A stretch of 64,000 nucleotides of DNA from Mizuhopecten yessoensis (taxonomy: Eukaryota). Numbering within the stretch: the stretch's first letter is position 1; each line of letters starts with the position of its first letter. The notes below the pieces were generated by a model. That model did not search any database. It worked only from the letters and a program-made list of their open reading frames with translations, and was not told where the DNA came from. Both the position numbers and the translations under genes were made by a program. Below are positions 10,801 through 60,200 of the stretch, piece after piece. Location of the stretch: assembly GCF_002113885.1 (NCBI RefSeq), contig NW_018407700.1, positions 2,893,877-2,957,876 of the forward strand, written 5' to 3'.

Positions 10801-13800
10801 AAATGGAGTTTAATCTAGCCAGCAACATGCGAACTTCATTTCAGAAAATATCACGCAATTATAAAAAAAAATAATTGGAGCATGACTGAGTTGTAATATA
10901 ATGAAATACGGCGGGGCATGCTTGTCTATCAACTTTGAGCCTAATTCGTTTTGTGACAAAAAATGTTTCTTACTCTATCACATGTTGGTTCTCAAAGATT
11001 ATCCCTCAGATTCCGTGTCGTCACTGTATCATCATAGCAAGGTACCAGTCACACAAACCCGGAGAGTCGACATTCTATCAGTGCGCTGACGTCAGAGTCA
11101 TTACAAACTTCAGCAGTGGCGCGACACCCGAAGTTCTGCATACTGATCCGAGCTTCAGAACGGCTAACGCAGTTTATGAACTTCACAAATCCTCACCAAT
11201 GCGAACAGAATTAACAGACACAGTCCGTCTTCAGGGACTCGTCTACAATGAATTTGAACCGGATCGCATTCACTTTGTAAATATTTCATTGAACACCGGT
11301 TTTATTCAAGAACTGAATACATTTGACATTGGTTTGGATTATTCTGCGAGACGATCTCTCCAGCCAACAAGTGGTAGAGATCCAACGATCCTACCCTTTA
11401 AAATGAACTTTTTAATTGATGGGATTGTGGCTGTAAATCGCGAATCAAACACCGTTTTAACAGTTTATCATAATGGTGGTTCAATGGATGACGTTGCCAG
11501 TAACGTAATGGCGATATACACAGATAACGGAGAGTTGAAATTAACCAAACCAATTCAGGACTTTGACGGCGTCCCAATAAGTGCATTGGTATTCGTGAAG
11601 CCCCAAACTTACGCCTCCTTCAGCATACAAGAGGATCATGACAATCAGGGTTTGTCTATCAATTCAACTCAAGTTCAGTAAGGAGATGCTCGAAAGGATG
11701 CTAATGATGTGAATTATGCAAAGTTCAATTGTTCGATAAGATCATTGTAAATATTATAAGAAAATTATGATATTTATGTCTTTTCATTTCATAAAAGCAA
11801 AGTACATCTGTTGTTAATATTGCACCACAGGTACTAGCCTCGTCTGTCAATACACCTATGATATAAGCAAGGTTACTATATATTTAACTCCGTCCCCCTA
11901 GTAAAATGACCTAGTTCCAGAAAACATGCGATTTTGTCATAACCGTTTATAGTCTGACGCCGGGAGCAGTCGAGATCAACAGGAAAATAATATTTCTTTA
12001 ATTTGATGTATGAGTTGCCATATATCATCCAGTATGATTTTCGGTAGACTTCATGAAACATCGAAAAATAGTCGAATTTCAGTTGGTCGGACACTGTGCT
12101 GTCCACGGGATGACACGCTAAATTCCTAGTGGGTAGCGCAAAACACCCCCATATCCGCTATTCAATGTCGGCACAGTATTTCTATGATTGGAAACAAACT
12201 TACTTGTATGATTGTTCATGGCCCAACATTATCATGTCGGACACCCGAATCCAGTTTTCAAGTTGGTCAGGCTGACGATCGGAAATCTGAACAGACCTGC
12301 AATTTTCTTTAACTTTTGTGATCTCTGCCCTGATTGACTTCTAAATCTAACGGACCGATCAGAGCCGAGGTCACAAAAAATAGATGAAATGGCAGGCTCT
12401 TTTAAGATTTCCGATCGTCAGCCTGACCAGCTTGTAAACTGGACTCGGGCGGAGTTAGCAACCTTACCTATATTATAGGTGTATTAAGGGACGAAGCCAG
12501 TACATGTGATTGCACTGATCAATTCCTTATGTTTTTAGGCAACTTTTACTTTATCCTTGGGCAAATCACCATCGCTCCGACAGGCGACCTAGTCTACTCA
12601 CGAATATACAAGAGCAACACCACAGAGGACAAGTACATGAATTACAAGTGGTCAACCTATGATGTCACCACTGGTATTATGTATGTTTTGATGGACCGAG
12701 ATGGCTCAGCTACTCCGGATACCCGAATATACACATACAGCGTCACAAACAAGTACATAATTAGAACTCAATTTATGTAACATGGTATTCACGGCATTTA
12801 TAGCAAATCATAAGTGATTTACGTTATCATTTTACATTTCAAGGGGTCGTGATCACTCCTTGACTAATAGTAGTACTAGAAATACATTTTTGTGCTGATT
12901 TGTTTGGAGTTTACGCTGTGATTTACGCGATGTGCTTCGGGTAATGTACATTGGAATTTACTGATGCAGCTTTCCAAATTTGGTGTTTGTAAAACTATAT
13001 ATCTCATGACAGTTTATTTTAGAATTTACGGACTTTATCCTATATAAATGATTAAGATCGAAGAAATATGTAAAGATTCAAATATTGGTGTCGGTTCATA
13101 AAACCTATGTAATTATGGTATTTTTACCCAATCACTATACGTTTAGTATGCTGGTAATGACATGGTGTTCAATACTAAACTATAACGATGAAATGTTACT
13201 TTCTGTCGCACTTTCTCTTTGAATTCGTTCTTGGCGATTACTAATTACTAGATGATTACCCGATGAACATTTCAGACAATAGTCCTGTATCTTCCTGATT
13301 TCTGTATTCAAATGCGAAATTCAAAAATCTTTATTATTAAATTCTAAGGATTTCCCGGGGCAATTTTTCTTTTTGTTTTGTGAACGTCCTCACAACAGCT
13401 AAGGTGACATGAACACGGTATCTTGGGAAGACTCGGCAGATAGCCTAGAACAATTATACCTGTCCTTTAAAATTCTGTTGAATATTCATTGATTCATCGT
13501 GAAAAACGAGTCCACAAGACAACTAGAATACAATGTCTTTTAATATTAAATCCAACAGATATTTAATGACAGTGGTTGAAGTACGAAAATGCGGATACGA
13601 TATTGCATCCATGCATGTCTTTCACCCTCACGCCTCCAGTAAAGGTCGTACGTATATTGCACATAGTAACGTTATAATGTCATCAAAATAATCGCAATAC
13701 CAGAGATTCTGTTCGCTGTAATATATATTGAACGCCTTTATCTCTATATGTTATTGAAAATAAAGTTATTTTTATTTATAAAAATACACCAATCGGTGCC

Positions 13801-16800
13801 AAACATTTATCTCTAATTCGAGGTAACTCGAATGAGTTTTCACACTTCACAATAATATTCTTTTGATATATTTTGTAATTTTTGCGAATACTTTGCAATG
13901 TTTGTTATATAGAATCTTGCCTACATTTGCTCACGGAAAAGGACACATATCAATGTGTTTGAACTCTCTTCATTCAATACAATTATTGTGACAATGAAAG
14001 AATGCCCTGAAATCCAATTGTTCAGCAAATAACTTGTCTAGATATCAATGTTTTGCCAGCCCAATTGATGGTTTCCTGAAATTATACGAATGCGCTAAGT
14101 AACTCACAGGGCAATATAAAAGATTGAATTCGGTGCAAAATGGACCCCCATTTTGTGTCAAAGTTCAATGTTATTCCAGTTTTCTTCTAAAGCTAATATG
14201 ATTCCCGACCCCTTTTTCCAGCCTACCTTAACAGCTTGTTAAGTCCACTGTGTTGTTTTCTGGCCTGGCTTTACAGCTTGTATAGTCCACTTCCTGTTTC
14301 TTAGCCTATCTTTACAGCTTGTGTAGTCCATGTTACTGTTGCTTAGTCTGTCTTAACAGCTTGTATAGTACATCACCTGTTTCTTAGCTTACCTATATAG
14401 TTTATATAGTCCACGTCCTGTTTCCCAACCTACATTTACAGCTTGTATAGTCCATGTTACTGTTTCCTAGCCTACCATTACAGCTTGTATAGTCTATGTC
14501 ACTGTTTTCTAGCCTACCTTTATAGCTTGAATAGTCCATGTAACTGTTTCCTAGCCTACATTTACAGCTTGTATAGTCTATGTTACTGTTTTCTAGCCTA
14601 CCTTTATAGCTTGTATAGTCAACTTCCTGTTCCCAAGCCAACCTTTACAGCTTGTATTGTCCATGCTACTTTTTCCTATCCTACATTTACAGCTTGTATA
14701 GTCTATGTTACTGTTTTCTAGCCTACCTTTATAGCTTGTATACTCAACTTCCTGTTCCCCAGCCAACCTTTACAGCTTGTATTGTCCATGCTACTTTTTC
14801 CTAGCCTACCTTTACAGCTTGTATAGTCCACGTTACTGTTTCCTAGCCTACTACCTTTACAGCTTGTATAGTCCATGTTATTGTTTCCTAGCCTTCCTTT
14901 AGAGCTTGTATAGTCCATGTTACTGTTTCCTAGCCTACATTTACAGCTTGTATACTCCACGTTACTGTTTCCTCATCTACCCTTTCATCTGTTTCCTAGC
15001 TTACCTTTATAGCTTGTATAGTCCAGTTCCTGTTCACCTGCCTGCCTTACATGTTACTGTTTCCTAACCTTCCTTTATAGCTTGTATAGTCCACTTCCTG
15101 TTAACCAGCCTGCCATACATGCTACTGTTTCCCAGCCTACCTTTATAGCTTGTATAGTCCACTTCCTGTTTTACAGCATACCTTTACAGCTTTTATAGTC
15201 CATGTTACTGTTTCCTAGCCTACCTTTATAGCTTGTATAGTCCACTTCCTGTTTTACAGCCTACCTTTACAGCTTGTATAGTCCACGTTACTGTTTACTA
15301 TCATACTTTGACAGCTAGTATAGTCCACTTAATGTTTCTTAGCCTACCTTTACAGCTTGCGAAGTTCATATTGCTGTTTTCGAGCCTACCTTTTAAGCTT
15401 GTATAGTCCACGTTACTGTTTCCTAGCCTACCTTTACAGCTAGTATATTCCACTTCCTGTTTCGTAGCATGTCTTTATAGCTTGTATAGTCCATTTTCTG
15501 TTTCTTAGCCTGCCTTTACAGCTTGTATAGTCCACTTTGCTGTTACCTGGCCTACCTTAAAGCTTGTATAGTCCATATTGCTGTTTTCCAGCCTACCATT
15601 TAAGCTGGTATAGTCCACGTTACTGTTTCCTAGCCTATCTTTAAAGCTTGTAAAGTCCATATGGCTGTTTCTATTCTACCTTTTCATCTTTTCTTAAATT
15701 AACAGTTTACATAGTCCTCTTTGGTGTTCCTAGCCTATCTTTACTTTTACATCTTTCTAGCGACGAAGTCCACTTTGCTGTTTCCCCTTGCCTTTGTTAA
15801 TCAGCCTTCCTTTATAGCCTATATATAGCCCATTTAACTGGTTTCCAGCCTACATTTACTCTAATCCAGTTCTACTTCCCAGTTTACCTTTACAGCTAGA
15901 CACATTTCACTTTGCTGTTTCAAAGCCTTTTTATAAGACTTGGAACTCGGTTAACGTTGCTATTTTCCGGTCAACTTTACCTCCTTTCACACAGGCTACA
16001 TTGTTGTTTCCCAGGGTACATAGACCATAAACGTTTTGATCAGTACCCTCTGTTGTTTTTTCAGTCTACCTTTACAGCATTGCTCCTGAAGGACCCCTCT
16101 GGAACAGAAGACCGCCGTGGAGCCTTATTAAAATGGACCCTCTGACTGGTGACGTCAAACCTGTTGCCCACGTTGCTGAAGCTGGTGCGCAACTTTATTA
16201 AGACCTAAGCAACACATGTGCATTTATTGTGATGGAATATATAACAAAGTTAAGGATTTGTCGGGAAAATAACTATCAAAGGCAGTTCCGACCTCAGATT
16301 ATTATTTTGCAAGATTTTCGAATCACTTTTTGAACAAACATTTTTCACTTGATGCATATGTATTCATCACAGAACAAGCTTCGCATTTTCAATTATGTTT
16401 GATGTGTTAGTGAGTCCCTATTCTGTTTGTTTAATCTTGATATATTTGAGAAACTTGATTTTTAATAAATAAAATGTGTCGTTACATCGCAGCATGGTGG
16501 AATAATATATATATGTTCCCTTGCTTATGGCACCAAATAAATAAAATGACAAAACTTAGATGATGCGTAGATGATGTTCATAATTCTCTTTCCTGTCTAA
16601 GATGTTACATAAATATGAAGCAGTATGTCTTTAAGGTGTACCACAAGAATGACTGAAATGTACAATGTATCAACATTTCCTAAGTTCCGTTGTTATGCTT
16701 ACTTTTCCAGGATTATTCGACAGATATAATGGGGGAGCTGTAACCGGCGGATTGGACCAGACCTCTGGAATGCTATTTCATATACTCCGGGTTTCGGATA

Positions 16801-32300: not shown

Positions 32301-35300
32301 CACAAACATGATATTTTAATGAATTTCATATAGCTATACATCATTATAACATGTCATTCAATAAAATCATGATCAATATATCATAATGATGACATATACA
32401 TTGTTTTGCTCATATATGTTTTTTTAGAACACACGTACGTATATCATTGAATATAAATATATTAAATTGCACATTATATGTATTGCAAATTTTGTTTTAT
32501 TACACATATTCATTTTTTTGCTCATAATATTTTAATTTTATCATAATTTTTATTGAACATATTTTTGATTGGACGTCCATATATATAATGCAAATATATT
32601 TACTTCTATTAAATACAAATACAAAATATTGCATATATATTTACAATTGTTGAATAGAGACACGAAATATTGAATATATTTACAATTATAACATACAAAT
32701 ATAAATCAATTTACATTTATTGCAAAAAAAAAAAAAATCAACCATGCGTTAAGAAAATATTGAATTTTGCAAAGTTTGACATGTCATGTGTGAATTTGAT
32801 TTCACAAATTTTATTTGCTCCAAATATCAATCTAGACCTTATGGTAGAGTTGATGCCTGATGTTCTTGTTAAGATACTCTTACATGGTTCTGATACAATA
32901 AACGAAGCCTCAAACAAAATAATTTTTGATCTTGAGATTCTAAATGTCTCCGTTTCTATCTCTCTTCTTTCTTTTCTCTTCCCCTTTCCTTTCTGTAATT
33001 GTGTGGGTGTCTAAGTGAAAGCGTGTGAATAGGTGTCATATATGTTTCATATAGATCTGTGTCATATTTAGTCATTGTACATATTGTATTGTTTTGTTAC
33101 ATGTTGAGGAAAGCATCTAGTAGCCCCCGGGCTGTATGCAATCCTCGCTACAGAAATACATAATTAAACCAGATTTTTTATATTCTAGGATCGGACAACA
33201 TTGGGCTTCTTTTTCTGCAAGCGAAAAGGAAAGGTATATTTCCGCAACTGCGGAATCAAGACCTGGTATTGTTGAAATGAAACCACTACATAATGGAAAG
33301 TCAAGACATGGTAACGTCACAGTTGGGTCAAGACATGGCATTGTTGAAGAACAGCCACGAGTGAGTGCCGACTCAAGGCATGTTAACGTCACAGCTGGAC
33401 CAAGACATGGCATTGCTGAAGAACAGTCACGAATGAGTGCCAACTCAAGGCATGGTAACGTCACAACTGGACCAAGACATGGCATTGTTGAAGAACAGTC
33501 ACGCGTGAGTGCCGACTCAAGGCATGGTAACGTCACAGCTGGACCAAGACATGGCATTGCTGAAGAACAGTCACGAGTAAGTGCCGACTCAGGACATGGT
33601 AACGTCACAGCTGGACCAAGACATGGCATTGCTGAAGAACAGTCTCGAGTGAGTGCCGACTCAAGGCATGGTAACGTCACAACTGGACCAAAACATGACA
33701 TTGCTGAAGAACAGTCAAGAATGAGTGACGGGTCGAGGTATGGTAACGTCACAGCTGGGCCAAGACATGGCATTGCTGAAGAACAGTCACGAATGAGTGC
33801 CAACTCAAGGCATGGTAACGTCACAACTGGACCAAAACATGACATTGCTGAAGAGCAGTCAAGAATGAGTGACGGGTCGAGGCATCGCAACACAGCTGGA
33901 CCAAAACATGGTATTGTTGAAGTAATGTCACGAGTGAGTACCGAGTCGAGGCATGGTAACGTCATAGCTGGACCAAGACATGACATTCCTGAAGTGAGGT
34001 CACTAGTTATTGCCGACTCAAGGCATAGTAACGTCACAGCTGGGCCAAGACATGGTATTGCCGAAGTACAGTCACGAGTGAGTACCGACTCGAGGCATGG
34101 TAACGTCAAAGCTGGACCAGGACATGGTATTGCTAAAGTGAGGCCATTAGTTAGTGCCGACTCAAGGCATGGTAATGTCACAGCTGGACCAAGACATGGT
34201 ATTGCTGAAGTAAAGTCACGAGTGAGTGCCGACTCAAGGCATGGTGCCGGTGGTAAGTGAAATTAAGTACAAGTCGATGTTGAGCCCAACGGCAACCATG
34301 GAACAAATAAGGTTGAGTTATTCAAGAACCGAGAAATAACAGTAGGAATAAGTCAATCATAAGTTATGACATCATACCAAACGGACAGTTATAATGCTTC
34401 AGTCACATTTGCGCCGGCCGCCGACCAGGAAGTATAGGAATCGGCCGGCTTCCCGGGGACTGTTATAAGCCTTGAGTATGGTCACATCAGATACGGGCAC
34501 CGCACGGCCCCCGCAAAACAAATGCCGGATTAAATCGAACGGACATCTGAAGGATATCGTAGGGAGCCCAAAAGACTATCGCAAGGATACCGCAAGGCTA
34601 TCTGACGATGGATGGGTTGTCGTACGGTGGCCGGGGAATGCTGGTGTAACGGGCGGGATACGTACGTAGCCCGTACGATATAAAGGGAGGCACACAAGTC
34701 AGCACCTAGCTCGTCCGTGAGAAAATGGCGCCTGCAGATGTCCGTATGTGTTTGAGGACATCGAGCGGCTACCTTATGATGGCCGTACGGCACTCGGCAG
34801 GACATCGGGCGGTCTACAGTAAACCTGGGAGCATGAAAAATTGTACAAAATCCCAAGATGACCGGACGATGCTACCGGGAGCCGTAAGATAATCTTAGGA
34901 AATCATTGCAGGACACTTATGGGAGACTGCCGGGTAGGTTCCGATAAGTTTGGGTCAGAAAAAATCGGGGGGACACCGGCAACTTCTATCTCCGCGCTAA
35001 AATCTCCCGGCGACCCATGTTGCGTCTAAAAGTCGGCCGATAGTGGCCGATAATCTCCGGGCGTCCTTATATAATTACGATTCCCCGGCTTGTCGACCGG
35101 TTTTGGCAAAAAAACTCATCGCCCGGGCGCCTTTTCGGAAATCGGCGTAAATGTGACTGAAACAGTAGGCGGAGTCTTTCTTGATCAAAGACATGCATGA
35201 TGCATGGTACCAGTACGGTTGAGTCATTTTTAAATCAAAATGTTAAACCAGACATATGTATTGGTTATAAGAGTTTGAACATTAAGCACGAATCCGAAAC

Positions 35301-44442: not shown

Positions 44443-44529
44443 TCAGTGAAAGTGAAAGTAGTATCACATGACAGGGAAGAAAAACAAAGAAGACGTCGAC
44501 ACTGTTTTCTTGAGAGATCGTCTTGCACC

Positions 44530-47500
44530 ATGTACATAAGATATATTTCAAAGATATTAATGTTTTTAACATGCTTTAGTCTTGTTAATTCTGAAAGTGT
44601 GCACTCTCCCAGCTTTCCGTGGGACCTTTCTATGGATTATCTGGAAATGCAGCACATGAAACTGAAATATGGATTGACTGGAATACCACCAATAACGAAT
44701 AGGTCGGCCCCGTATCCTGTTTATGACAATTGTATGGCATACCTTGAAGAGTTTGGGAAATATGCATCAAAATTTATCAAGTGTACCGTTGAGAAAGCAA
44801 GACCGTTTCGATTCTGTGAGGAATGTGTGATACACTACAAACTTACAATCGAATTGTATTCAAATATTTTAGAGGTAATGCACACCGATCTATTAATATC
44901 AGTGTTAATACTTTTTGTGAATTGGGGAGAAATAAAAAAAGTAAGGTACACTTATTTTAATTAAATTTATTAATATTGGGTTGTAATGGGAAATATAAAT
45001 ATGACTTCACACTATTGACAGTATTTATCTTTGTCTAAATGTAAATAAAATTAAAAGGAGGGAAGAATGAGGATGTACAAACTTTTTTACAAAGATATAA
45101 AGGGGTGCAGACCTAATGATATAAGGGGTGCAGACCTAATGATATAAAGAGGTGCAGACTTAATGATATAAAGGGGTGCAGACCTATGTAGAATGCTAAT
45201 TAAGAATATGTATATCCAAATTATATCGTCATGTCAGATGGAAACAGACTAGCACAACAATTTGCAAATCTGTTATATTAAACCTGCTGCATTATAATAT
45301 TATACTGCTTAGTATGTACATTGTACATCATGTACGGATGTATATGATTATTTAAGAAATCACAACAGGGAAATACAGTTGTGTGACCGCACAATGCACC
45401 AAAAACAGCGTGCGCACACCGTGCATACATCGTTCACACACCGTCCGCACATTGTCCACACATGGTGCACACAACTGTGCGATTTAACAATCGTTCGCCC
45501 TGTTGTGCCTGTATGTACGCACAACTGTGTGATTGGATACAATTTGTAGATCAATAGTACGGAATGAAAAAAATACGGAAAGCTCGTATGCAATAATGAA
45601 AACTGTATGTATTACTGTAATTTCTCATCACAGTCCTGAAGATTATGTACAGCTTTACAATGCGTGTAACACAGCATTACAGTGATTGTTAGATTAGGTT
45701 TGCTCCAAGGTAACAGAACAGGTAAATAACAATTTGATGAATGACCGGAGTTTTACCTGGCCTGTACCTGACACATAGAGCTGATATGCGATACTGTACG
45801 TTTAGTATTTGTTATTTGCATTCAGTTTACCTATAGCTCCCCTTTACCTGGGTTTTCACACCTCTGGCCCTACCGGATGAAATACGCAAGCGCCCCGGGC
45901 GGGGGAAAACTACGGTCCAGGTGCATGTACAAAGTGGCTATGTTTACCTGTATACGGGACAGTGTTTTAATTTCACATGTGTCGATTAAGGTCGTTTAAA
46001 AAATACTGAAAACACAATTTCTTATTTTAAGAAAATATAGACACAAAGATAAGCTTATAGATGTAGGGAGAATATAGAAACATACAAAATGTACGTAAAA
46101 ATCAAGTTCATTTGTTTTAACACGAAACCGTATATATTAAGGCATTCCTCAATTTACATTAACCACAATTGATATCGCACATCGTTCCTCCATCGTGAAC
46201 ACAAATGTGCGCAAGCAATGATCGTCTAACTTTTTATCGTTCGCACATTGTGCACACACCTTGCACACACATGTGCACATTGTGTAACGTTGTGTGATCC
46301 CACAACTGTACCAGATTGGTGATCTTGAGCTGAAACTAACTTGTACATATTTGTACAGGTAGCCTATTTCTGAAAATCAGGTCTGATTCTACTTTTGAAG
46401 TATAAATTAATATAATTTCTACAAATTTTCCATCTTCAGACTTGTTTCGTTACTTAATACATGTAGAGTGTACTAGCTGCAGAACTTTGACTTTGTGCTT
46501 GTATCATTAATGTCTTTCTTAACTTTATCCCTGAAGATTTTCTAAAGGAAAGAATCATTTAAGTTCAGGAAAACCATAAAGAATTTCTTTTGTAACTTCT
46601 GTAATGCTTTTGGAAGGAAAATCTGAAGTCAAAAGATTATATTGTAACTTTTGTGAAATTGGGGCCAGCTATAAGGTTATGAATGGATATCGTTAACATA
46701 TTGACCCTTTACCAAGTTTAATGTTGGCTGTGATCACTCTGCTAACGCAAGTAGGAAATTTAATATTTCTTGGATTTCTATTCCAGGACGACAAAGACAA
46801 AGATGATTGTAAAAGTTTGCTGCTAAATGCTGATCGTATCCAAGTACTTAATGAGATTTACAACAACATAGAACAGATTTGGAAGGAAGCTAACTGTAAA
46901 GGTAACAAATGTCATATTCCTGATTCTCATGGTGGTCTCGTCAACCTAAAGACGCATAATAAACTAACTTCATCAACCGACAGAGTAAAGTTCATCAACC
47001 TTAGAGATACATTGCATAGTAGGCTGATAAAACTACAAATGCCTCTCACATTGACTGTCAACTTTTATTATCAGCCTATAGATACATTTCATTGCTTAAT
47101 CTGGATAACATTCATAACATCAACTGTACAGCTAGCTCTCAATATATGCAGTCAGCCCTTCACTAACAAAATCCATGTATGACACTTAGTTAATTTGTGT
47201 TGGAAATCAGATAGCAAAAACATTATATTGTATTCAATTAACTGGATAATTTCCTGTTAAAATACATTGTTTGAAATTAATGCTATAACAGCATTTTGGA
47301 TTTACATCATTGCAAATTCAAGTTTGATTCATATTGGGTGGTTGGCTGGCACAGCGTATTAATACGCTGAGCCTCTACAGTATATATAGTTTCTGTTGCA
47401 GTAATTTTGGTTTTAGAACAGCTGTGATTTATGGATGTGTATGTTGGTACTAATTGCTGTAATATTATTACAGGATGTTTCAGAAGTGTGGCTGTAGATG

Positions 47501-49317
47501 TCAACGGTACAGTTGTCTATAAATACAGCAAAGACACAATGGAATTCATGGACAAATATAAAGTGGTGTCTGCATGTCTGCGCCACAATCAAGCTCATGG
47601 GGTAACTATCGCAATTTTGTTTCAAGTCGCTTTCATATAAAATACATACAAATACCATAGCCGGTAAATGAATTTTAAGATGAAACTCTGCCTGCATAAT
47701 TCAAAATGAAGCCTATTCATAAGCACTACATATAAGTGTCTTCCCGGTCACCTCAACCAAATAAAACACTGTATGTGTGTATACGTATCTATAGATAAAA
47801 TATGCTGTCAGGTACACTGTATAACCACACAATTGCTATGTACATGTAAATATAATACTGCCGTCCATTTATGAAATAATCAATATGTTTCATTTATAAC
47901 TCTAGATAACAATTTCATTTCAATAAAGGAATTGGAATCCTTCTATAGCTATTTCTGGGGGTATGTTTAATTCTTTATGCTCTTTATTGATAAAATAGAT
48001 GTGACCAACTTGTACACTACCTTTATGTTTTACAGGATGGCAACAATAGTGTGTGTGAGGTTTGTCGGGGAAATTACACACAGCTGAATTCTTTCTTCAA
48101 GAAAGTGCGAGCAGCTAAAAAAGATTCTGTGTGTATGGATCTTGTGGATATGGTAAGATACTGATTGATTGAATTTGTAAAAGCTATTTTTTTCAGCCAA
48201 GTTTTATTGCATTTCATTTGCGCTTGACAATCTTATTATCTTCACAACTTATGAACAAATAATAATTGAGTTATTCATGAGAAGGAAATATATTAAATTT
48301 GCTTTTTTAATTGAAAACCATGTTTATGTTTTCAACACTTTTTTCTAAAGAGAAAGTTTTCAATCTTTTAATTTTTTGTGTTATCGTGAGCTGCCTGTGC
48401 TGACTAGATTTGTATTTCAGATGAACTACACACGCCTGATGTGGGGTCAGCAGCTTCACTGCTCCCGACACTCCCCTGATGATGCTGTAGTGGTCATTAT
48501 AGCAGTGGCTCTCCTCGCACTGCCAGTAGTCTTCTATGTTGGAGCCAGGTACTTCGTAGTGAGGACTAAAAGAAAACTGATGCTGCGTACGTATATATAT
48601 TTGAAGTTTTTCCTAACTTTCATATATTTCTCTCCCAGAACTTTATACTGATATAAAAGCAAAGATGGCCAACCCAACTTGCCTTTTTTTTTTTTTTTAA
48701 ACATGTGGAAACCTTTTCATTCTCTTCTCAACCTAGCCTATTTAAACCAAACTATATATACAAATGTAGTCCCCTAATAGCTTTAACTAGAGGTTTGGAT
48801 TTGGGTATTATCAAGATCAAGGGTTTTGTTATCCGAAACCCATAAAAAATATACTCTTTGAACTTTTATTGAGTACATGTACTAAGTATATTGGAGCAAT
48901 AGTAGATGCGGAGATTGATGGGAGAGCACCTGTCAAAAACTGCTGTGTAAAATACTTTATATAAGGTTTAATGTTATTAGGTAGTGACTTTAGGTAAGGA
49001 CAAGTAAAGGGAGGTAATTGAGTCTATGGATGCGTATGTATTAAAACACAATGTCTATCACTGATAACTGGTCATGTAACAAATCAACCCTTACAATCAA
49101 TGTGACAACACAGAATCTGGTGTAGGATGTGAATGAATCATATATAACCTCTCACTACACAATCTGATGTTATATTCAGTCCTTTTTTTATCTTTGTTTT
49201 TTATTAGAAAAGAGAATGTCCCAGGTTGCTGCACAGACATTGTTTATTCGAGGAGCTGCCAGCAGTACTAGTAAAGATGATGAGGAAACACAGCTTTTAT
49301 CTACCTCCTTCTCCTGA
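44530..49317 (+). CDS. OSTM1: Osteopetrosis-associated transmembrane protein 1 (ClC-7 beta subunit), ~326 aa
   Basis: Exons 44530-44874, 46787-46901, 47474-47601, 48036-48152, 48421-48586, 49208-49317. Signal peptide, then C..ARPFRFCEEC, LLNADRIQV...WKEANCKGC, VCEVC..Y..LN, CMDLVDMMNYTRLMW...HC, TM helix LPVVFY and KRKLMLQKR; this matches the OSTM1 Cys pattern. Confidence 0.93.
45093..45186. repeat. ~23-bp tandem repeat (GATATAAAGGGGTGCAGACCTAAT) x4
   Basis: Direct periodicity. Confidence 0.8.
45376..46308. mobile_element. MITE (~930 bp) with TA TSD in OSTM1 intron 1
   Basis: TA|CAGTTGTGTGACCGCACAA ... TTGTGTGATCCCACAACTG|TA; GCACA-rich subterminal repeats. Confidence 0.7.
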
Positions 49318-50128: not shown

Positions 50129-52052
50129 AGTAACTCTTTTTCTTTTAGGGAAAAATTAATATTATTATCAACCCGAAAAAAATTGGGGGGGTTATACATG
50201 TAGCCGTCATGCAGGGTGTCTGTCCATCTGTCAGTATTTCTCGTTTGGATAAAAATATCTTGTATCAATCAGCATGCCTGTGGTCTTCCTCGTTGAGCTA
50301 TATTATTAGATACCGGCCATAAATCATGGCAAAGGACCTTGCATCCGAAGAGCCTTTAACATTTTGTATTTAATCAATTTTTGAATCAGATAATAAAACA
50401 GCTCTAGACTTATGTGATGGTAAATATGATGTGATATGAACCTGCACTTCAGCTTGGTCAATATCACCTTTTCAGGTCTATATGGCCTTATATGAGAGAG
50501 TATGAAACCGTATATACCTGATCATATTCACTTTCACATCAGTCTATAACTGTATAGTGACTGGTGTGTTGGGTGCTGAAGGGTGAATGTACATTAGTGA
50601 AAGATGTTTATTGGTTGTAAGTGATGGACATTGAGTAAAGGATGTTTTGAATGAGAAAATGAAGAGTCCCTTGTTTACATTTAAGTTAGATTTAATTACT
50701 TAACATACATTTGCATTGCTTTTAATCTGTACATATTTGAGAGATAAACACACTGGAAAATTAGAAACTCTAATCTCATTTCTCCTTCATAGAAAATTAT
50801 CATATGCTACTGCTATTAATTAATATAAGGTCTATACTACAATTCTATCTTTTATATTCATTTCACATGTCCTACATACCTTCTGTTTCATTTACTACAG
50901 CCCTGTTAATATCAATATGGTATGGTGCTATGTTTAAAACATGTAATTACATAAACTTGTTAACAATTGTGATTAGAAGTTTGTATCAATTCATCTCTGA
51001 TAGAATTATAAGACTATTTCATGCCAAAGGGTGTAGGATAGGGAAATTCTATTCGAGATATTTTCAAATTGTTTTATCCAATTTGAAAGTCATGAGGGTG
51101 ACATTTTTCTATCCCACACCCTGGGGCATGAAAGATCATCTCTCACTCATTCCACTTATCACTAAAATCAGCTCAGAAACCACAAAAAGGTTACAGCACC
51201 ATGCATCAAAATGTTTCCCATTTTGGGACATCACATCCCGTTTGTCCCATTTTCACATCACACACCTTAAATGGGGTGTAGGATAGAAAGTTTTTTCACC
51301 CTTTTGTTACCCTGGGTAGTTATGTCACATACACACAGGAATGAAAGAAAACAGCCATAGCACCAACACAATGCTGATTATGTACTTTGAGAAATTCCTG
51401 TAGGCTCAGTCACTGGTGGAGCCTAAGCCCTGTTTCCACATTCTGATTACAATAAAATATTCTCATATCCTATAGAAATAAGATAGTGTAATCACCATGA
51501 CATGTATTTTAAAAACATATTTCCACTGTTGGCACATTATTATGGAGCTTTCCTGTGATATATATTATTTAAATTAAATGTTTTGTTTATCTCATGAAAT
51601 AGAGTAAGAAATGATTTGTTTATTTCAGTTTCACATTTATTCATACTGTACATGTACACCTGTGTGTCTCTTAACAGAATATACTTTAACAATCGTCCAA
51701 TACATGTGACAGTACCTAACTTTGTATATGATGTGTTTTCTGTCTGAAATATGTAAAATAAAGTAAGGAAACGTTTTTATGTGTTGATTTCGATCTGATG
51801 CATTAGCAGTGATTATGATTTAAACCAAAACATCATGTTTGTTTTGGTTCTAGTATAATGATCCAGTATATACATATTGTACAACTGAGTAGGGTAGGGG
51901 CTGAACAATATACGTCCATTATATGCCAAAGTAACATGCCAAGAATCCTCCCAATTCATTCTTGTATCAAAATGTATGAACACATAAAATGTAATAAAAA
52001 GAAAGTACATTTGTACTACATTACTCTGTAAATGACTTATTTCTGAGATATG

Positions 52053-54940
52053 GTGAGAGCACAGGTACTAGCCTCGTCTCTCAGTACACCTATAAGATTA
52101 TAGTATAGGTGTATTGACAGACCAGGCTAGTACCTGTGGTGAGAGGACAGGTACTAGCCTCGTCTCTCAGTACACCTATAAGATGATAGTATAGGTGTAT
52201 TGACAGACCAGGCTAGTACCTGTGGTGAGAAGACAGGTACTAGCCTCCTCTGTCAGTACACCTATAAGATTAAAGTATAGGTATATTGACAGACCAGGCT
52301 ATAGTACCTGTGGTGAGAGGACAGGTACTAGCCTCGTCTGTCAGTACACCAATAAGATTATAGTATAGGTGCATTGACAGACCAGGCTAGTACCTGTGGT
52401 GAGAAGACAGGTACTAGCCTCCTCTGTCAGTACACCTATAAGATTATAGTATAGGTATATTGACAGACCAGGCTAGTACCTGGGGTTAGAGGACAGGTAC
52501 TAGCCTTGTCTGTCAGTAAACCTATAAGATTATAGTATAGGTGTATTGACAGACCAGGCTAGTACCTGGGGTGAGAGGACAGGTACTAGCCTCGTCTGTC
52601 AGTACACCTATACGATTATAGTCTAGGTGTATTGACATACCAGGCTAGTACCTGTGGTGAGAGGACAGGTACTAGCCTCGTCTTGCAATACACCTATAAG
52701 ATTATAGTATAGGTGGATTGACAGACCAGGCTAGTACCTGTGGTGAGAGCACAGGTTCTAGCCTCGTCTGTCAGTACACCTATAAGATCTCTCAGTACAC
52801 CTATAAGATGATAGTATAGGTGTATTAACAGACCAGGCTAGTACCTGTGGTGAGAGGACAGGTACTAGCCTTTTCTGTCAGTACACCTATAAGATTATAT
52901 TATAGGTGTATTGACAGCCCAGGCTAGTTCCTGTGGTGAGAGGACAGGTACTAGCCTCGTCTTGCAATACACCTATAAGATTATAGTATAGGTGTATTGA
53001 CAGACCAGGCTAGTCCCTGTGGTGACAGGACAGGTACTAGCCTCGTCTGTCAATACACCTATAAGATTATAGTATATGTGTATTGACAGACCAGGCTAGT
53101 GCCTGTAGTGAGAGGACAGGTACTAGCCTTGTCTGTCAGGACACCTATAAGATTATATTATAGGTGTATTGCCAGACCAGGCTAGTACCTGTGGTGAGAG
53201 GACAGGGACTAGCCTCGTCTGTCAGTACCCCTATAAGATTATAGTTTAGGTGTATTGACAGACCAGACTAGTACCTGTGGTGAGAGGACAGGTACTAGCC
53301 TCGTCTTGCAATACACCTATAAGATTATAGTATAGGTGTAATGACAGACTAGGCTAGTCCCTGTGGTGAGAGGACAGGTACTAGCCTCGTCTTGCAATAC
53401 ACCTATAAGATTATAGTATAGGTGTAATGACAGACTAGGCTAGTGCCTGTGGGGAGAGGACAGGTACTAGCCTCGTCTGTCAATACACCTATAAGATTAT
53501 AGTAAAGGTATATTGACAGCCCAGGCTAGTACCTGTAGTGAGAGGACAGGTACTAGCCTTGTCTGTCAGGACACCTATAAGATTATATTATAGGTGTATT
53601 GCCAGACCAGGCTAGTACCTGTGGTGAGAGGACAGGGACTAGCCTCGTCTGTCAGTACCCCTATAAGATTATAGTTTAGGTGTATTGACAGACCAGGTTA
53701 GTACCTGTGGTGAGAGGACAGGTACTAGCCTCGTCTTGCAATACACCTATAAGATTATAGTATAGGTGTATTGACAGCCCAGGCTAGTACCTGTGGTGAG
53801 AAGACAGGTCCTAGCCTCCTCTGTCAGTACACCTATAAGATTATAGTATAGGTATATTGCCAGACCAGGCTAGTACCTGTGGTGAGAGGACAGGCACTAG
53901 CCTCGTCTCTCAGTACACCTATAAGATGATAGTATAGGTGTATTAACAGACCAGGCTAGTACCTGTGGTGAGAGGACAGGCACTAGCCTCGTCTCTCAGT
54001 ACACCTATAAGATGATAGTATAGGTGTATTGACAGACCAGGCTAGTACCTGTGGAGAGAGGACAGGTACTAGCCTCTACTGTCAGTACACCTATACGATT
54101 ATAGTATAGGTGTATTGACATACCAGGCTAGTACCTGTGGTGAGAGGACAGGTACTAGCCTCGTCTGTCAATACACCTATAAGATTATAGTATAGGTGTA
54201 TTGACAGACCAGACTAGTACCTGTGGGGAGAGGTCAGGGACTAGCCTCGTCTGTCAGTACACCTATAAGATCTCTCAGTACACCTATAAGATGATAGTAT
54301 AGGTGTATTAACAGACCAGGCTAGTACCTGTGGTGAGAGGAGAGGGACTAGCCTCGTCTGTCAGTACACCTATAAGATTATAGTATAGGTGGATTGGCAG
54401 ACCAGGCTAATACCTGTGGTGAGAGGACAGGTACTAGCCTTGTCTGTAAATACACCTATAAGATTATAGTATAGGTGTAATGACAGACTAGGCTAGTGCC
54501 TGTGGTGAGAGGACAGGTACTAGCCTCGTCTGTCACTACACCTATACGATTATAGTATAGGTGTATTTACAGACAAGGCTAGTCCCTGTCCTCTCACCAC
54601 AGGCATTAGCCTGGTCTGCCAATCCACCTATACTATAATCTTATGGGTGTATTTACAGACGAGGCTAGTACCTGCCCTCTCACCACAGGTACTAGCCTCG
54701 TCTTGCAATACACCTATAAGATTATAGTTTAGGTGTATTGACAGACCAGGCTAGTACTGTGGTGAGGGGACAGGTACTAGCCTCGTCTGTCAGTACACCT
54801 ATAAGATTATAGCATAGGTGTATTGACAGACCAGGCTAGTACCTGTGGTGAGGGGACAGGTACTAGCCTCGTCTGTCAGTCCACCTATAAGATTATAGTA
54901 TAGGTGTATTGACAGACCAGGCTAGTGCCTGTGGTGAGAG
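52053..54940. repeat. 86-bp palindromic satellite, ~33 units: 79-bp mini P-like element plus 7-bp TSD GTGAGAG
   Basis: Unit = 35-bp arm + 9-bp loop (AGATTATAG) + 35-bp inverted arm + GTGAGAG. The arms match the TIRs of the 11826-12508 element. Confidence 0.95.
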
Positions 54941-55659
54941 GACAAAACATTGTACTCCACCAGCTCATCATATCATAATATATGTCCAGTTGTACACCGG
55001 TCAGTCATTTTGAGGGACATATATATATATAATTACACCTGCACTCTGCCAGAGATGCTGGTTCGGTGCCGTATCGTAGTGACTGTGTATATATGAAATC
55101 ATGGTGATTTGTGCCATGCTCATTTTGGTATGTCTCTAAAAAGTCTATCTGTGATCGAATATCAAGAAGTTAAGTTAACGTAAGTATTTCCTATAAGAAT
55201 GTTTGAAATCATAAACATACTGGATAATGAAAATATGCCCCACTTAAAGTGTGGATATGAAACAGGTGGTCAAGAAGCATCAACTGCTTAAAAACAGATC
55301 AGAGACATATAAAGTATATACGTCTCTGAAAAGATCGAGGATCAGGTAAATCAGGAAAATACTGATAACATTTTGACAAGTCAAATGAAAGGAAGTCTAC
55401 ACCCCAGACTAACGGGGCAGGATCGTGCACCGGATATCTTCTGTGTAAGTCAGATTTACGACACGCTACATTGTATTTGTTATTTTGTTCCAAACCAAAC
55501 TAAGGTACCACATGTAGTACTCGTTCACATATACTATAGTTTACACAATATTATATATTGTTAAGGGGTTAGAAATATACACTGACGCTTATTTAAGTCA
55601 TAGCGACCCTCTGTACATAACGGTCCACGATCACGTGTGGTTTCATAGATCCTTTGATC

Positions 55660-57208: not shown

Positions 57209-60200
57209 ATGGGCAGTTTTTCTGATGGATCCAGTCAAAACAAGATGTCGCTCCTTCTCAGAGGCTGTTTTGGTTGCCGTCGGAAGTCAAGCGAACTGTC
57301 TGAGAAGAAAACTAAAAAAGCCAGGTTATCTCTGATCAATCGCCTGAGGATACGGTGCTTACAAAGAACTGATGCATCTGAAACAGATGTCTGCAAAGTT
57401 ACGAAAGAAAAGAATAGTGTTTTGTCCAGAGCCAGGGAAGGCATGAATTGGCCTCTGTTAAGAATGACAGAGCGGTGTACTATTTTTCTCAGAAATTTCC
57501 ACATGAACTGGCGGTACTTCCAAGCGTTAAAGTCCGAAGGCCTCCTAGTGACGATTGCTTCATCAGTGGCATCGCCTGTTCTCAACATAGCATGGCTCTT
57601 CACGGACGGTGAAATAACGAACACCCGTCAGTCATTTCACTCATCGCACCAGAAATCCAACTGGGACGTCGTTATTTATACGGGGATTACGGTGGAAATG
57701 AAAGCCAACTTTAACTACGATCACGTCAACGAGCCAATATTAGACGGTTTACCCTGCTCGTATTGGCTGGAGATGATCGAGCCGACCATCCCCATTATAT
57801 TGGATCTGTTTTCAATGAGGCACAGAAAGACTAACTTGAGCAGACTAAGGTAGTATTTACTGAACCATGTAACTCTAGAAGTTAGTTTGTCTATGTAACG
57901 CTGCAAACATTGTAACCTGTCTATACCGAATACGAAGTGTAGAACACTTTTCCAGAAAACAAGACACGGGGACATGGTCTCCAAAATAAAGACTGTCTGT
58001 ACCGTACTAAAGTTATAGAACACTTGTCCAGTACAAGATACGGGAAAGGGGTATCCAAAACATTCACTGTCTATACCGGACACAAGTTATAGAACACTTG
58101 TCCAGGAAACAAGATACGAGGAAGGGGGTCTCCAAAATATAGACTCTCTATACCGGAAACAAGTTATAGAACACTTGTCCAGTACAAGATACGGGAAGGA
58201 GGGTGTCCAAAGTATAAACTGTCTATACCGGACACGAGTTATAGAACACTTGCCCAGTATACAAGACACGGGGAAGGGGGTCTCCAAATTAAAGACTATT
58301 AACCGGACACGAGTTATAGAACACTTGTCCAGTACAAGATACGGGAAAGAGGGTGTCCAAAATATAGACTGTCTATACCGGACACGAGTTATAGAACACT
58401 TGCCCAGTATACAAGACACGGGGAAGGGGGTCTCCAAAATAAAGACTATTAACCGGACACGAGTTATAGAACACTTGTCCAGTATACAAGACACTGGGAA
58501 GGGGGTCTCCAAAACATAAACTGTCTATACCGGACACAAGTTATAGACACTTTTTCAATATAAAAGATACGCGAAAGGAAGTGTCTGAATTCGTGTCCAG
58601 TATAGTAGACAACGGGTAAGGAATTGTCTGTATTCGTGTCCAGTATAGTAGACAACGGGTAAGGAATTGTCTGAATTCGTGTCCAGTATAGTAGACAACG
58701 GGTAAGGAATTGTCTGAATTCGTGTCCAGTATAGTAGACAACGGGTAAGGAATTGTCTGAATTCGTGTCCAGTATAGTAGACAACGGGTAAGGAATTGTC
58801 TGAATTCGTGTCCATTATACTAGTCAACGGGAAAGGAAGTGTCTGAATTCGTGTCCAGTATACTTAGACAACGAGAAAGGAAGTGTCTGAATTCGTGTCT
58901 AGTATACTTAGACAACGGGGAAGTATCTAAATCCGGACCCAGCATCCAGTATGTTTAATACTGATTTACATGTACACAACGGGACAGTCTCCAATATATA
59001 ACCTGTCTATACCTGACGTGAGTTACTAGAATTACGGAAGCAAAGATATAAATAGAATCCATCCCTAATGTAAAGAGTCACTTCGTTTTGCGGTCTAGAC
59101 ATAGATAGATACATTTGTTAATCTAATCTAAACTGAAATGTAATTTAAAAAGTACAAAAGAACATTTCTATAGCACAAAATAAGTGTCATGTTTTATATA
59201 AATTACAAATACAGCTGTATCAAATTCTCATGTGCCTGTGGTTTCATTGACAGATTTACATTTTTGTGTTATATGAATGATATACAGTAGGTCTGCCAAT
59301 CAAGGGATATATAAGCTTACTTCGAAGTGTGTTAAATGTATTGCAGGGCCTTTGAGTATATATATGAAGACTTCATGACCCGCCATGGAGATACATTTAC
59401 GGACCAACTTGATCCGAATATGCAAGGCCCCCATCAGTTGCTGGTGAACCGGATACACAACACGCCTTTCCCGACCATGGAACTCGGCACCACGGCTGCC
59501 TTAGTGCACAATGCCATGATCAACAGGGAACGTCAATTTCAGGTACGCTAGTTGTGAGGGCATACATTGATTACCTACATGTACGTGTGTGGTCCAACAC
59601 ATACTGTATATATAATACAAACGTCATGTGGGCAATATAGTTATTTAGTGCGACATGTGTGTAAGCATGTAATAGGACTGGACTGCCAAAGCCCTGCCGT
59701 CAACCCTGGTTCGATGTGGTTGACCTTTGGCTTCTGTGATCAAGCACTCAATAAATACCGTAAGAACACTCAACGCAATGTATATTTATACCCTTCGATT
59801 TTATTTATTTACACCCAAATATTCCTTATATCACTAAAACATAAACTAAACGAAACAAGCTACCAGCGAATCAATGCTACCGCAGTAGGGTCAAAGGCAT
59901 ATCGTTTTCGTTACACATATGTTCATTCTTCAGATACACATTCAGTAAATGAATAGTATATCGGTCATTTGCACACGTGTTTTAAAATTAGGTCAAGGAG
60001 TCATATACCATTCATAATCTTTACTATTTTTGTTATTACATTACAGTATTCCATACTTCATTGCAGAAATGATACTCTCCAAAATATATAATTCAGATAT
60101 ATTATCCTCCATTACACAAAATTGTAATATACATTGTAATACACATAATCCCCAAGTAACAGGAGAAGCAACTCTGAAACATCCCTTTACAAGCACACAC

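Follow-up and report, generated by a model that had tools for sequence, protein, structure and literature searches.

A satellite array built from a palindromic mini-element

The 64,000-bp stretch of Mizuhopecten yessoensis DNA analysed here, which we refer to as the window (C4373:2893877-2957876 in an assembly of 988 Mb and 82,659 contigs), contains a satellite whose monomer is a short palindromic transposon joined to a copy of its target-site duplication (TSD). Tandem Repeats Finder (TRF) reported it as a single array at 52051-54944 with a period of 86 and a score of 4272. On parsing, the array resolved into 33 units arranged head to tail, each consisting of a 7-bp spacer and a 79-bp near-palindrome. 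The unit length is 86 bp in 29 cases, 88 bp and 85 bp in one case each and 107 bp in two, in which 21 bp are duplicated internally. The spacer measures 7 bp at all 34 positions and reads GTGAGAG at 22 of them, or at 24 if two inverted copies (CTCTCAC) are counted, the remainder being single-base variants. The same 7-mer stands on the plus strand at both ends of the array, as the left TSD copy at 52053-52059 and as the right TSD copy at 54934-54940. Parsing thus bore out the original prediction, made from the sequence alone, of an exact 7-bp separation with GTGAGAG as the bracketing sequence.

The first unit (52060-52138, plus strand) begins with CACAGG, the true terminus of the element. Units 2-33 (52139-54933, plus strand), each made up of the 7-bp spacer and the mini-element, nearly all start with G. 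Over the whole array this base opens 29 of the 33 units, as GACAGG in 26 of them and as GTCAGG, GAGAGG and GGCAGG in the others, the last of these being an inverted unit. Apart from unit 1, CACAGG is found at the start of unit 9 (position 52750) and at that of unit 31, in the latter case owing to its position next to the inverted unit. On the right, unique flanking sequence opens with GACAaaac at 54941, and its GACA (54941-54944, plus strand) matches the way in which the internal units begin and is the putative donor of their opening G. On the left, the flanking TG (52051-52052, plus strand) equals the two bases with which the unit ends (..CCTGTG), so that the direct repeat reaches beyond the TSD. 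The copy number and the asymmetry between unit 1, the later units and the right flank are therefore as originally described.

Folded as single-stranded DNA, the window unit forms a hairpin with 35-bp arms and a free energy of -27.5 kcal/mol, compared with -7.0 +/- 2.1 kcal/mol for shuffled sequences (z = -9.6). The arms pair almost perfectly and are identical to the terminal inverted repeat (TIR) of a 683-bp element located elsewhere in the window (11826-12508). The earlier claim that the units are hairpins with the TIRs of this element as arms was thus confirmed both by folding and by sequence identity.

The unit belongs to a mobile family with 7-bp target-site duplications

The 683-bp element is a non-autonomous member of the family on the plus strand and is flanked by ATTGCAC at 11819-11825 and 12509-12515 (11819-12515 including TSDs). 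A search of the genome with unit 1 returned solo matches running from the first to the last base on dozens of contigs. About 20 solo copies were fetched for inspection of their TSDs, and flanking bases were tallied on 16 solo insertions. At least 12 solo copies of 79 bp or about 0.6 kb carried perfect 7-bp TSDs, all of them different (for example GTTGCTC, GTCAGAC, TGTCAAC, AGTGTAA, CATGATG, ACTTTAC, CTTGAGG, ACTGAAG, GTTGATC, ATCCTGG and GTCAGTC), and several more had TSDs with one mismatch. Solo copies with differing 7-bp TSDs had been anticipated in the original prediction. The non-autonomous family of about 0.6 kb, which includes the 683-bp element, is abundant, with 632 first-look candidates, and a 31-mer of the TIR had 1,694 genome matches at up to three mismatches. 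The 79-bp unit is a mobile MITE (miniature transposable element with inverted repeats), that is, a non-autonomous DNA transposon with TIRs. In agreement with what had been proposed and with the structure of the array, the 86-bp monomer is a complete, TIR-only hairpin member of this family plus one copy of its own 7-bp TSD. None of the solo copies in the genome exceeded 93% identity to the window unit.

The flanks of the solo copies are not entirely random. The base after the right TSD was T in 12 of the 16 insertions, TG preceded the left TSD in 4 of 16, and the TSDs often began with GT and ended with AC or TC, which suggests a weak target preference.

DNA transposons of the P superfamily generate TSDs of 7-8 bp. 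The 7-bp TSD of the present family is compatible with this superfamily; TSD length by itself is not diagnostic and is the sole support for the label 'P-type'. A profile search of the assembly with PF12017 gave no match, and the control genomes were equally silent. The profile PF21787 detected 25 P-transposase-like loci in the assembly, and the family TIR was found within +/-1.5 kb of none of the 25.

Three further arrays carry other spacers

The genome was searched for junctions of the same type with a pattern comprising the right end of the element, seven unspecified bases and the left end. Three further arrays with locus-specific 7-bp spacers were found, as had been predicted, and two of them are bracketed by their spacer on both sides. 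The first, at C2675:129465-131871, has a period of 64 bp (a 57-bp mini-element plus GAATAAC) and 37.6 copies. GAATAAC is present on both outer sides and is followed by CAAG in the right flank. Its first 35 full units are identical, and 17 bp between TAC repeats have been lost from the first unit; the identity of the units reflects either a very young array or collapse to a consensus by the assembler. The second, at C388:435541-446924, has a period of 54 bp (a 47-bp unit plus GTTGATA) with 37.6 and 40 assembled copies, hence at least 77, around a 7.2-kb run of N, and would comprise some 200 units if this run consists of the same repeat. GTTGATA again lies on both outer sides, followed by CAAT on the right. 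The 47-bp unit has kept only CACAGG of the left arm and does not fold into a hairpin (-2.2 kcal/mol, z = 0.2). The third array, C2392:411742-412007, consists of four copies with a period of 65 bp (58 bp plus ACTGTAT). It has GTG and the full ACTGTAT on the left, while the right flank, ACTAACC, shares only ACT with the spacer; position 6 distinguishes the first unit from the remaining three.

In all three arrays complete elements stand head to tail, the junction is one TSD in length and the internal units retain the true CACAG terminus. The repeat phase coincides with the boundaries of element plus TSD in four of four arrays, the window array included, an agreement for which an arbitrary tandem duplication would have a chance of about 1/50 to 1/90 in each case. 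The repeated variants are private to the arrays, 37 of 37 genome matches for C2675 and 4 of 4 for C2392 falling inside the respective array. The ages of the sister arrays appear very different, with units ranging from essentially identical to about 12-14% diverged. Judged from their three different 7-mers, these arrays are three further independent events. Apparent dimer junctions at C1154 and C3225 were rejected, since both are solo elements with a chance CTGTG or CACAG in the flank.

A second locus with the GTGAGAG spacer

Apart from the window, the GTGAGAG junction was present at one other locus of the assembly only, C5587:470733-471037. There, at C5587:470533-471036, a rearranged 243-bp fragment of the 0.6-kb family is followed, after its right TIR, by three G-start units of 86 bp that have GTGAGAG as spacer. 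The outer right flank reads GTGTAAT and has only GTG in common with the spacer. Three derived states are shared by these units and those of the window: both begin with G, both have the same spacer, and the right arm reads ACCAGG instead of the ACGAGG of solo copies. The second of the three units matches window unit 25 at 98.7% identity and has kept the ancestral CAATAC, and the last right arm shows the ancestral ACGAGG. BLAST revealed no similarity between the flanks of this locus and those of the window array, and a segmental duplication or haplotig was rejected for this reason.

Arrays at unrelated loci all using GTGAGAG had been named in advance as evidence against an origin from a local insertion. 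This applies in part, as C5587 is such a locus. Since the three other arrays use other spacers, we read C5587 as a secondary copy rather than as a refutation. The simplest reading of its sequence is that exactly three periods were transferred, by homology, into a resident TIR; ectopic repair synthesis or the integration of a small circular trimer could have brought this about.

The shared spacer also bears on the view that the window array arose elsewhere and landed here as a piece of a pre-existing, dispersed satellite of 86 bp or of a composite element; GTGAGAG would then belong to the repeat itself and would not be a local TSD. The same spacer and G-start units at an unrelated locus are what would be expected from such a satellite, and the TRF periodicity in the window simply spans TG to GACA. 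We nevertheless consider this view very improbable. The junction occurs at only two loci in the entire assembly; in the window, C2675 and C388 the array phase lies exactly at the boundaries of element plus TSD, each time with a different 7-mer; unit 1 of the window has kept the true terminus C; and the C5587 copies lack an outer right spacer and are embedded in the TIR of another element. The window array was probably born in place, where its founder inserted, as the bracketing by the same 7-mer indicates.

Origin of the first dimer

We propose that a single TIR-only element inserted at GTGAGAG and that the first dimer would have formed in place by misalignment of the two TSD copies. Backward replication slippage, possibly aided by a hairpin in the nascent strand, could have led to this misalignment, as could unequal sister-chromatid exchange or repair synthesis. 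Taken together, we assign TSD-mediated misalignment by slippage, unequal exchange or repair synthesis a probability of roughly 0.6. By chance, the direct repeat available at this site would have been longer than the TSD, with TG plus GTGAGAG on the left and GTGAGAG plus (C/G)ACA on the right. The internal units carry the flank G and the flank continues with ACA, and hence the repeat before duplication is taken to be TG+GTGAGAG+(C/G)ACA and not merely 7 bp. A join to the right of the C/G mismatch would place the flank G in every new unit and leave the C in unit 1. Ordinary unequal exchange would then have enlarged the array to 33 units. Block duplications, the 21-bp internal duplication, the inversion of one unit between inverted arms and a neutral decay of about 5% per unit would have followed, and a three-unit piece would later have been copied, through homology in the right arm, into the TIR of the resident family member on C5587.

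The import of the flank G, already part of the original prediction, fits the sequence and gains support from the right edges of two other arrays. After the right TSD, the flank reads xACA in the window, CA at C2675 and CA at C388, with a joint chance of about 2e-4, and CA in this position was seen in only 1 of the 16 solo insertions. Counted over the seven intact array edges, 13-14 extra bases match, against an expectation of about 2.3 (P about 3e-5 to 8e-5). This extra microhomology favours TSD-mediated slippage or unequal exchange over a double insertion.

In a double insertion, a second copy of the mini-element, perhaps after a local hop from the sister chromatid or homologue, would have entered the 7-bp target retained in the TSD. 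The outcome would be TSD-TE-TSD-TE-TSD (TE, transposable element), later expanded by unequal exchange, with the first-base G as a mutation that subsequently spread through the array. The 79-bp solo copies are demonstrably mobile, and junctions of one TSD length in an array flanked by the same 7-mer are the signature from which such events were inferred for tandems of P elements, hobo and R1 (PMC5932611). Internal units that keep the true terminus, as in the three sister arrays, are likewise in line with a second insertion. In the window, however, two coincidences would be needed, in that the mutated base happens to equal the flank base (1/3) and the flank happens to continue with ACA (1/64), and the CA directly after the TSD of two other arrays would be left to chance as well. 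The second element would moreover have to come from the same locus, because the C2675 and C2392 variants are array-private and no solo copy is more than 93% identical to the window unit. Neither do the TSDs of the arrays fit the weak GT...AC target pattern any better than those of solo copies, although the sample is small. On balance we regard a double insertion, together with a later spread of the G, as unlikely but a serious alternative.

A circular intermediate would yield the same (spacer-unit)n-spacer structure. Here, the element and one TSD would be looped out by recombination between the TSDs, amplified as a rolling circle and returned as a concatemer to the donor site, while a product of three units would have entered the TIR of the relative at C5587. 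Rolling-circle replication is an accepted candidate for the formation of TE tandems (PMC5932611, PMC12628747), and it would account neatly for the presence of exactly three whole periods within the resident TIR. No direct evidence for this route was found, double-stranded DNA circles of only 54-86 bp would be very small, and with the present data the sequence outcome is indistinguishable from that of unequal exchange. We judge this route improbable.

Several observations weigh against TSD-mediated misalignment in place. The statistics on microhomology were computed post hoc from three to four arrays, and part of the signal could be target preference, since the left flanks of solo copies match TG above chance. 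The hairpin may promote the initial slippage; it is not needed for upkeep or expansion of an array, because the C388 unit, having lost its left arm, does not fold. The C2392 array is without a full spacer in its right flank (ACTAACC). Derived point mutations such as CAGTAC are nearly fixed across the window array, and the same could have happened to a C-to-G mutation. A 41-bp pattern for the empty site, with the two flanks joined by one GTGAGAG and up to three mismatches allowed, was absent from the assembly, which holds one allele. Finally, the existence of the second GTGAGAG locus means that an origin of the window array in situ is the simplest reading and not a proven one. It is weakened and not overturned by C5587, because only the window array has both outer spacers and a first unit with the true terminus. 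If the array did arise in place, an empty allele of the form ...ATATG-GTGAGAG-GACAAAAC... and an allele with a single insertion starting with C are expected.

Later history and surroundings of the array

The window units have a mean pairwise identity of 88.6%. No simple higher-order repeat was found in the array, unit identity being flat at lags 1-12, and the 172- and 258-bp periods reported by TRF were rejected as evidence for one, as they reflect local block duplicates. Such duplicates relate units 13-14 to 18-19, 15 to 16, 22 to 23 and the 107-bp units 9 and 26 to each other. Unit 9 (52743-52849, plus strand) has its 21-bp internal duplication at 52767-52809, and unit 26 (54226-54332, plus strand), a block duplicate of the unit 9 type, has the same duplication at 54250-54292. 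The single inverted unit lies on the minus strand at 54591-54683 together with both of its spacers, so that its reverse complement reads spacer-unit-spacer in register. The breakpoints are located inside the arms of the neighbouring units, which is what exchange between inverted arms, or template switching between them, would be expected to produce.

Divergence from the window consensus amounts to 3.9% in the spacer, 5.0-5.3% in the arms and 3.4% in the loop. Given this uniform decay, no constraint on the array is visible, and selection on the hairpin or on the spacer was rejected. The array contains no open reading frame of 60 or more amino acids, and there is no assembly gap beside it. There is no sign of a present function of the array.

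The setting is gene-rich. An OSTM1-like gene is encoded on the plus strand upstream of the satellite, with exons detected at 44446-44964 (positions 1-49 of the Pfam profile OSTMP1), 46721-47182 (positions 54-94) and 48376-48651 (positions 172-230), the last of which ends about 3.4 kb before the array. Five further mini- or satellite arrays are present in the window, at 494-1306 (period 43 bp), 14215-15690 (42/125), 33301-34245 (72), 57917-58552 (75) and 58575-58923 (43).

Tandem repeats of other kinds also occur within the transposon family. In some members, the left arm and loop (36-48 bp) are repeated four to seven times head to tail and end in one right arm, the whole lying within a single TSD pair. 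Examples are a copy on C690 (L045:177-518) with the TSD pair GTTGATC and a copy on C2675 at 14.9 kb (L049:177-410). Such internal repetition is a second way in which the family gives rise to tandem repeats. Long direct arrays of one TIR arm, each with dozens of exact copies, were located at C1128:758113-759455 (period 41 bp), C2088:26401-27351 (40 bp) and C796:8495-9156 (36-39 bp), the coordinates being those of the matches only.

Comparison with known tandem arrays

Tandem TEs with the TSD in the junction have been described for P-element dimers, a hobo array of 13-19 copies and an R1 array in Drosophila (McGurk & Barbash 2018, PMC5932611). Such one-TSD junctions, including those in dimers of bacterial insertion sequences, were read as double insertions followed by unequal exchange (PMC5932611). 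The arrays reported here resemble these tandems in that complete elements stand head to tail, the junction is exactly one TSD long, the target sequence is kept and a dimer would have expanded by unequal exchange. They differ in that the unit is not kilobase-sized but a TIR-only element of 47-79 bp (the 47-bp unit of C388 does not fold), that a single family accounts for four array loci, the copy number reaching about 78-200, and that bases of the flank agree with the element end even past the TSD, one of them having apparently been imported. Microhomology between TSDs, stem-loop models and rolling circles are discussed as alternatives in reviews (PMC9659126, PMC12628747).

MITEs that contain tandem repeats include DTC84 in Donax, pearl, and miDNA4/Xstir in Xenopus (PMC3879986, PMC12628747), and MITEs with internal repeats are well known from bivalves (PMC3879986). 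Common to these and the present case is a non-autonomous TIR element tied to a satellite-like array, here in an array-rich mollusc genome. In DTC84, pearl and miDNA4, however, the repeats are internal to one TIR pair, whereas each window unit carries both termini and a copy of the TSD. The feature of internal repeats is found in the family members L045 and L049 and not in the window array.

Under the stem-loop model put forward for the Angel MITE (Izsvak et al. 1999, summarised in PMC12628747), a MITE of palindromic structure folds back while it is replicated, and two copies result. That model involves an extrachromosomal stem-loop with inverted copies, which integrates elsewhere, in contrast to the direct, TSD-joined copies in place that are seen here. 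The foldback element Tetris of Drosophila virilis has given rise to a satellite (PMC4079207), which is likewise made of transposon TIR material. The Tetris satellite stems from sub-repeats already present within long TIRs and has no TSD in its monomer, whereas the monomer described here includes the TSD.

A mechanistic parallel concerns inverted repeats flanked by short direct repeats, which is the arrangement of a palindromic element between its TSDs; the hairpin brings the direct repeats together and promotes slippage. Palindrome-stimulated slipped misalignment between short direct repeats underlies precise excision of bacterial transposons and the reciprocal duplication, and is documented mainly as deletion in bacteria. 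The case made here differs in that the event would be a duplication seeding a satellite in a eukaryote. A search of the open-access literature brought up no account of a satellite that has an entire hairpin MITE and its TSD as monomer and that has formed recurrently from one family.

Significance for satellite formation

That a satellite was born from a transposon is clear in this case. It is not unprecedented, as tandems of a TE plus TSD are already known, and the window array is a well-documented example of a known route. As a rule, the passage from transposon to satellite can be retraced only by indirect means. In this genome a single family has preserved several of its stages, including the terminus of the founder, the TSD as spacer, a flank base apparently carried in, an inversion and block duplications, a secondary copy and three sister arrays.

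A broader proposal, which we put forward tentatively and which may well prove wrong, is that palindromic TIR-only MITEs are intrinsically prone to form satellites. The route would be backward slippage with the help of the hairpin, or repair synthesis, between the TSDs of the element itself, and not double insertion. Array formation would then be predictable from chance microhomology in the flanks, and a single family would have taken this path at least four times in the present genome. If the microhomology pattern holds genome-wide, misalignment of TSDs could be told apart from double insertion, and very short hairpin MITEs would be shown to be a recurrent source of euchromatic satellites in bivalves. 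If slippage at the hairpin is indeed the cause, this family, which also forms arrays of one TIR arm, would be a natural system for following the birth of satellites from start to finish.

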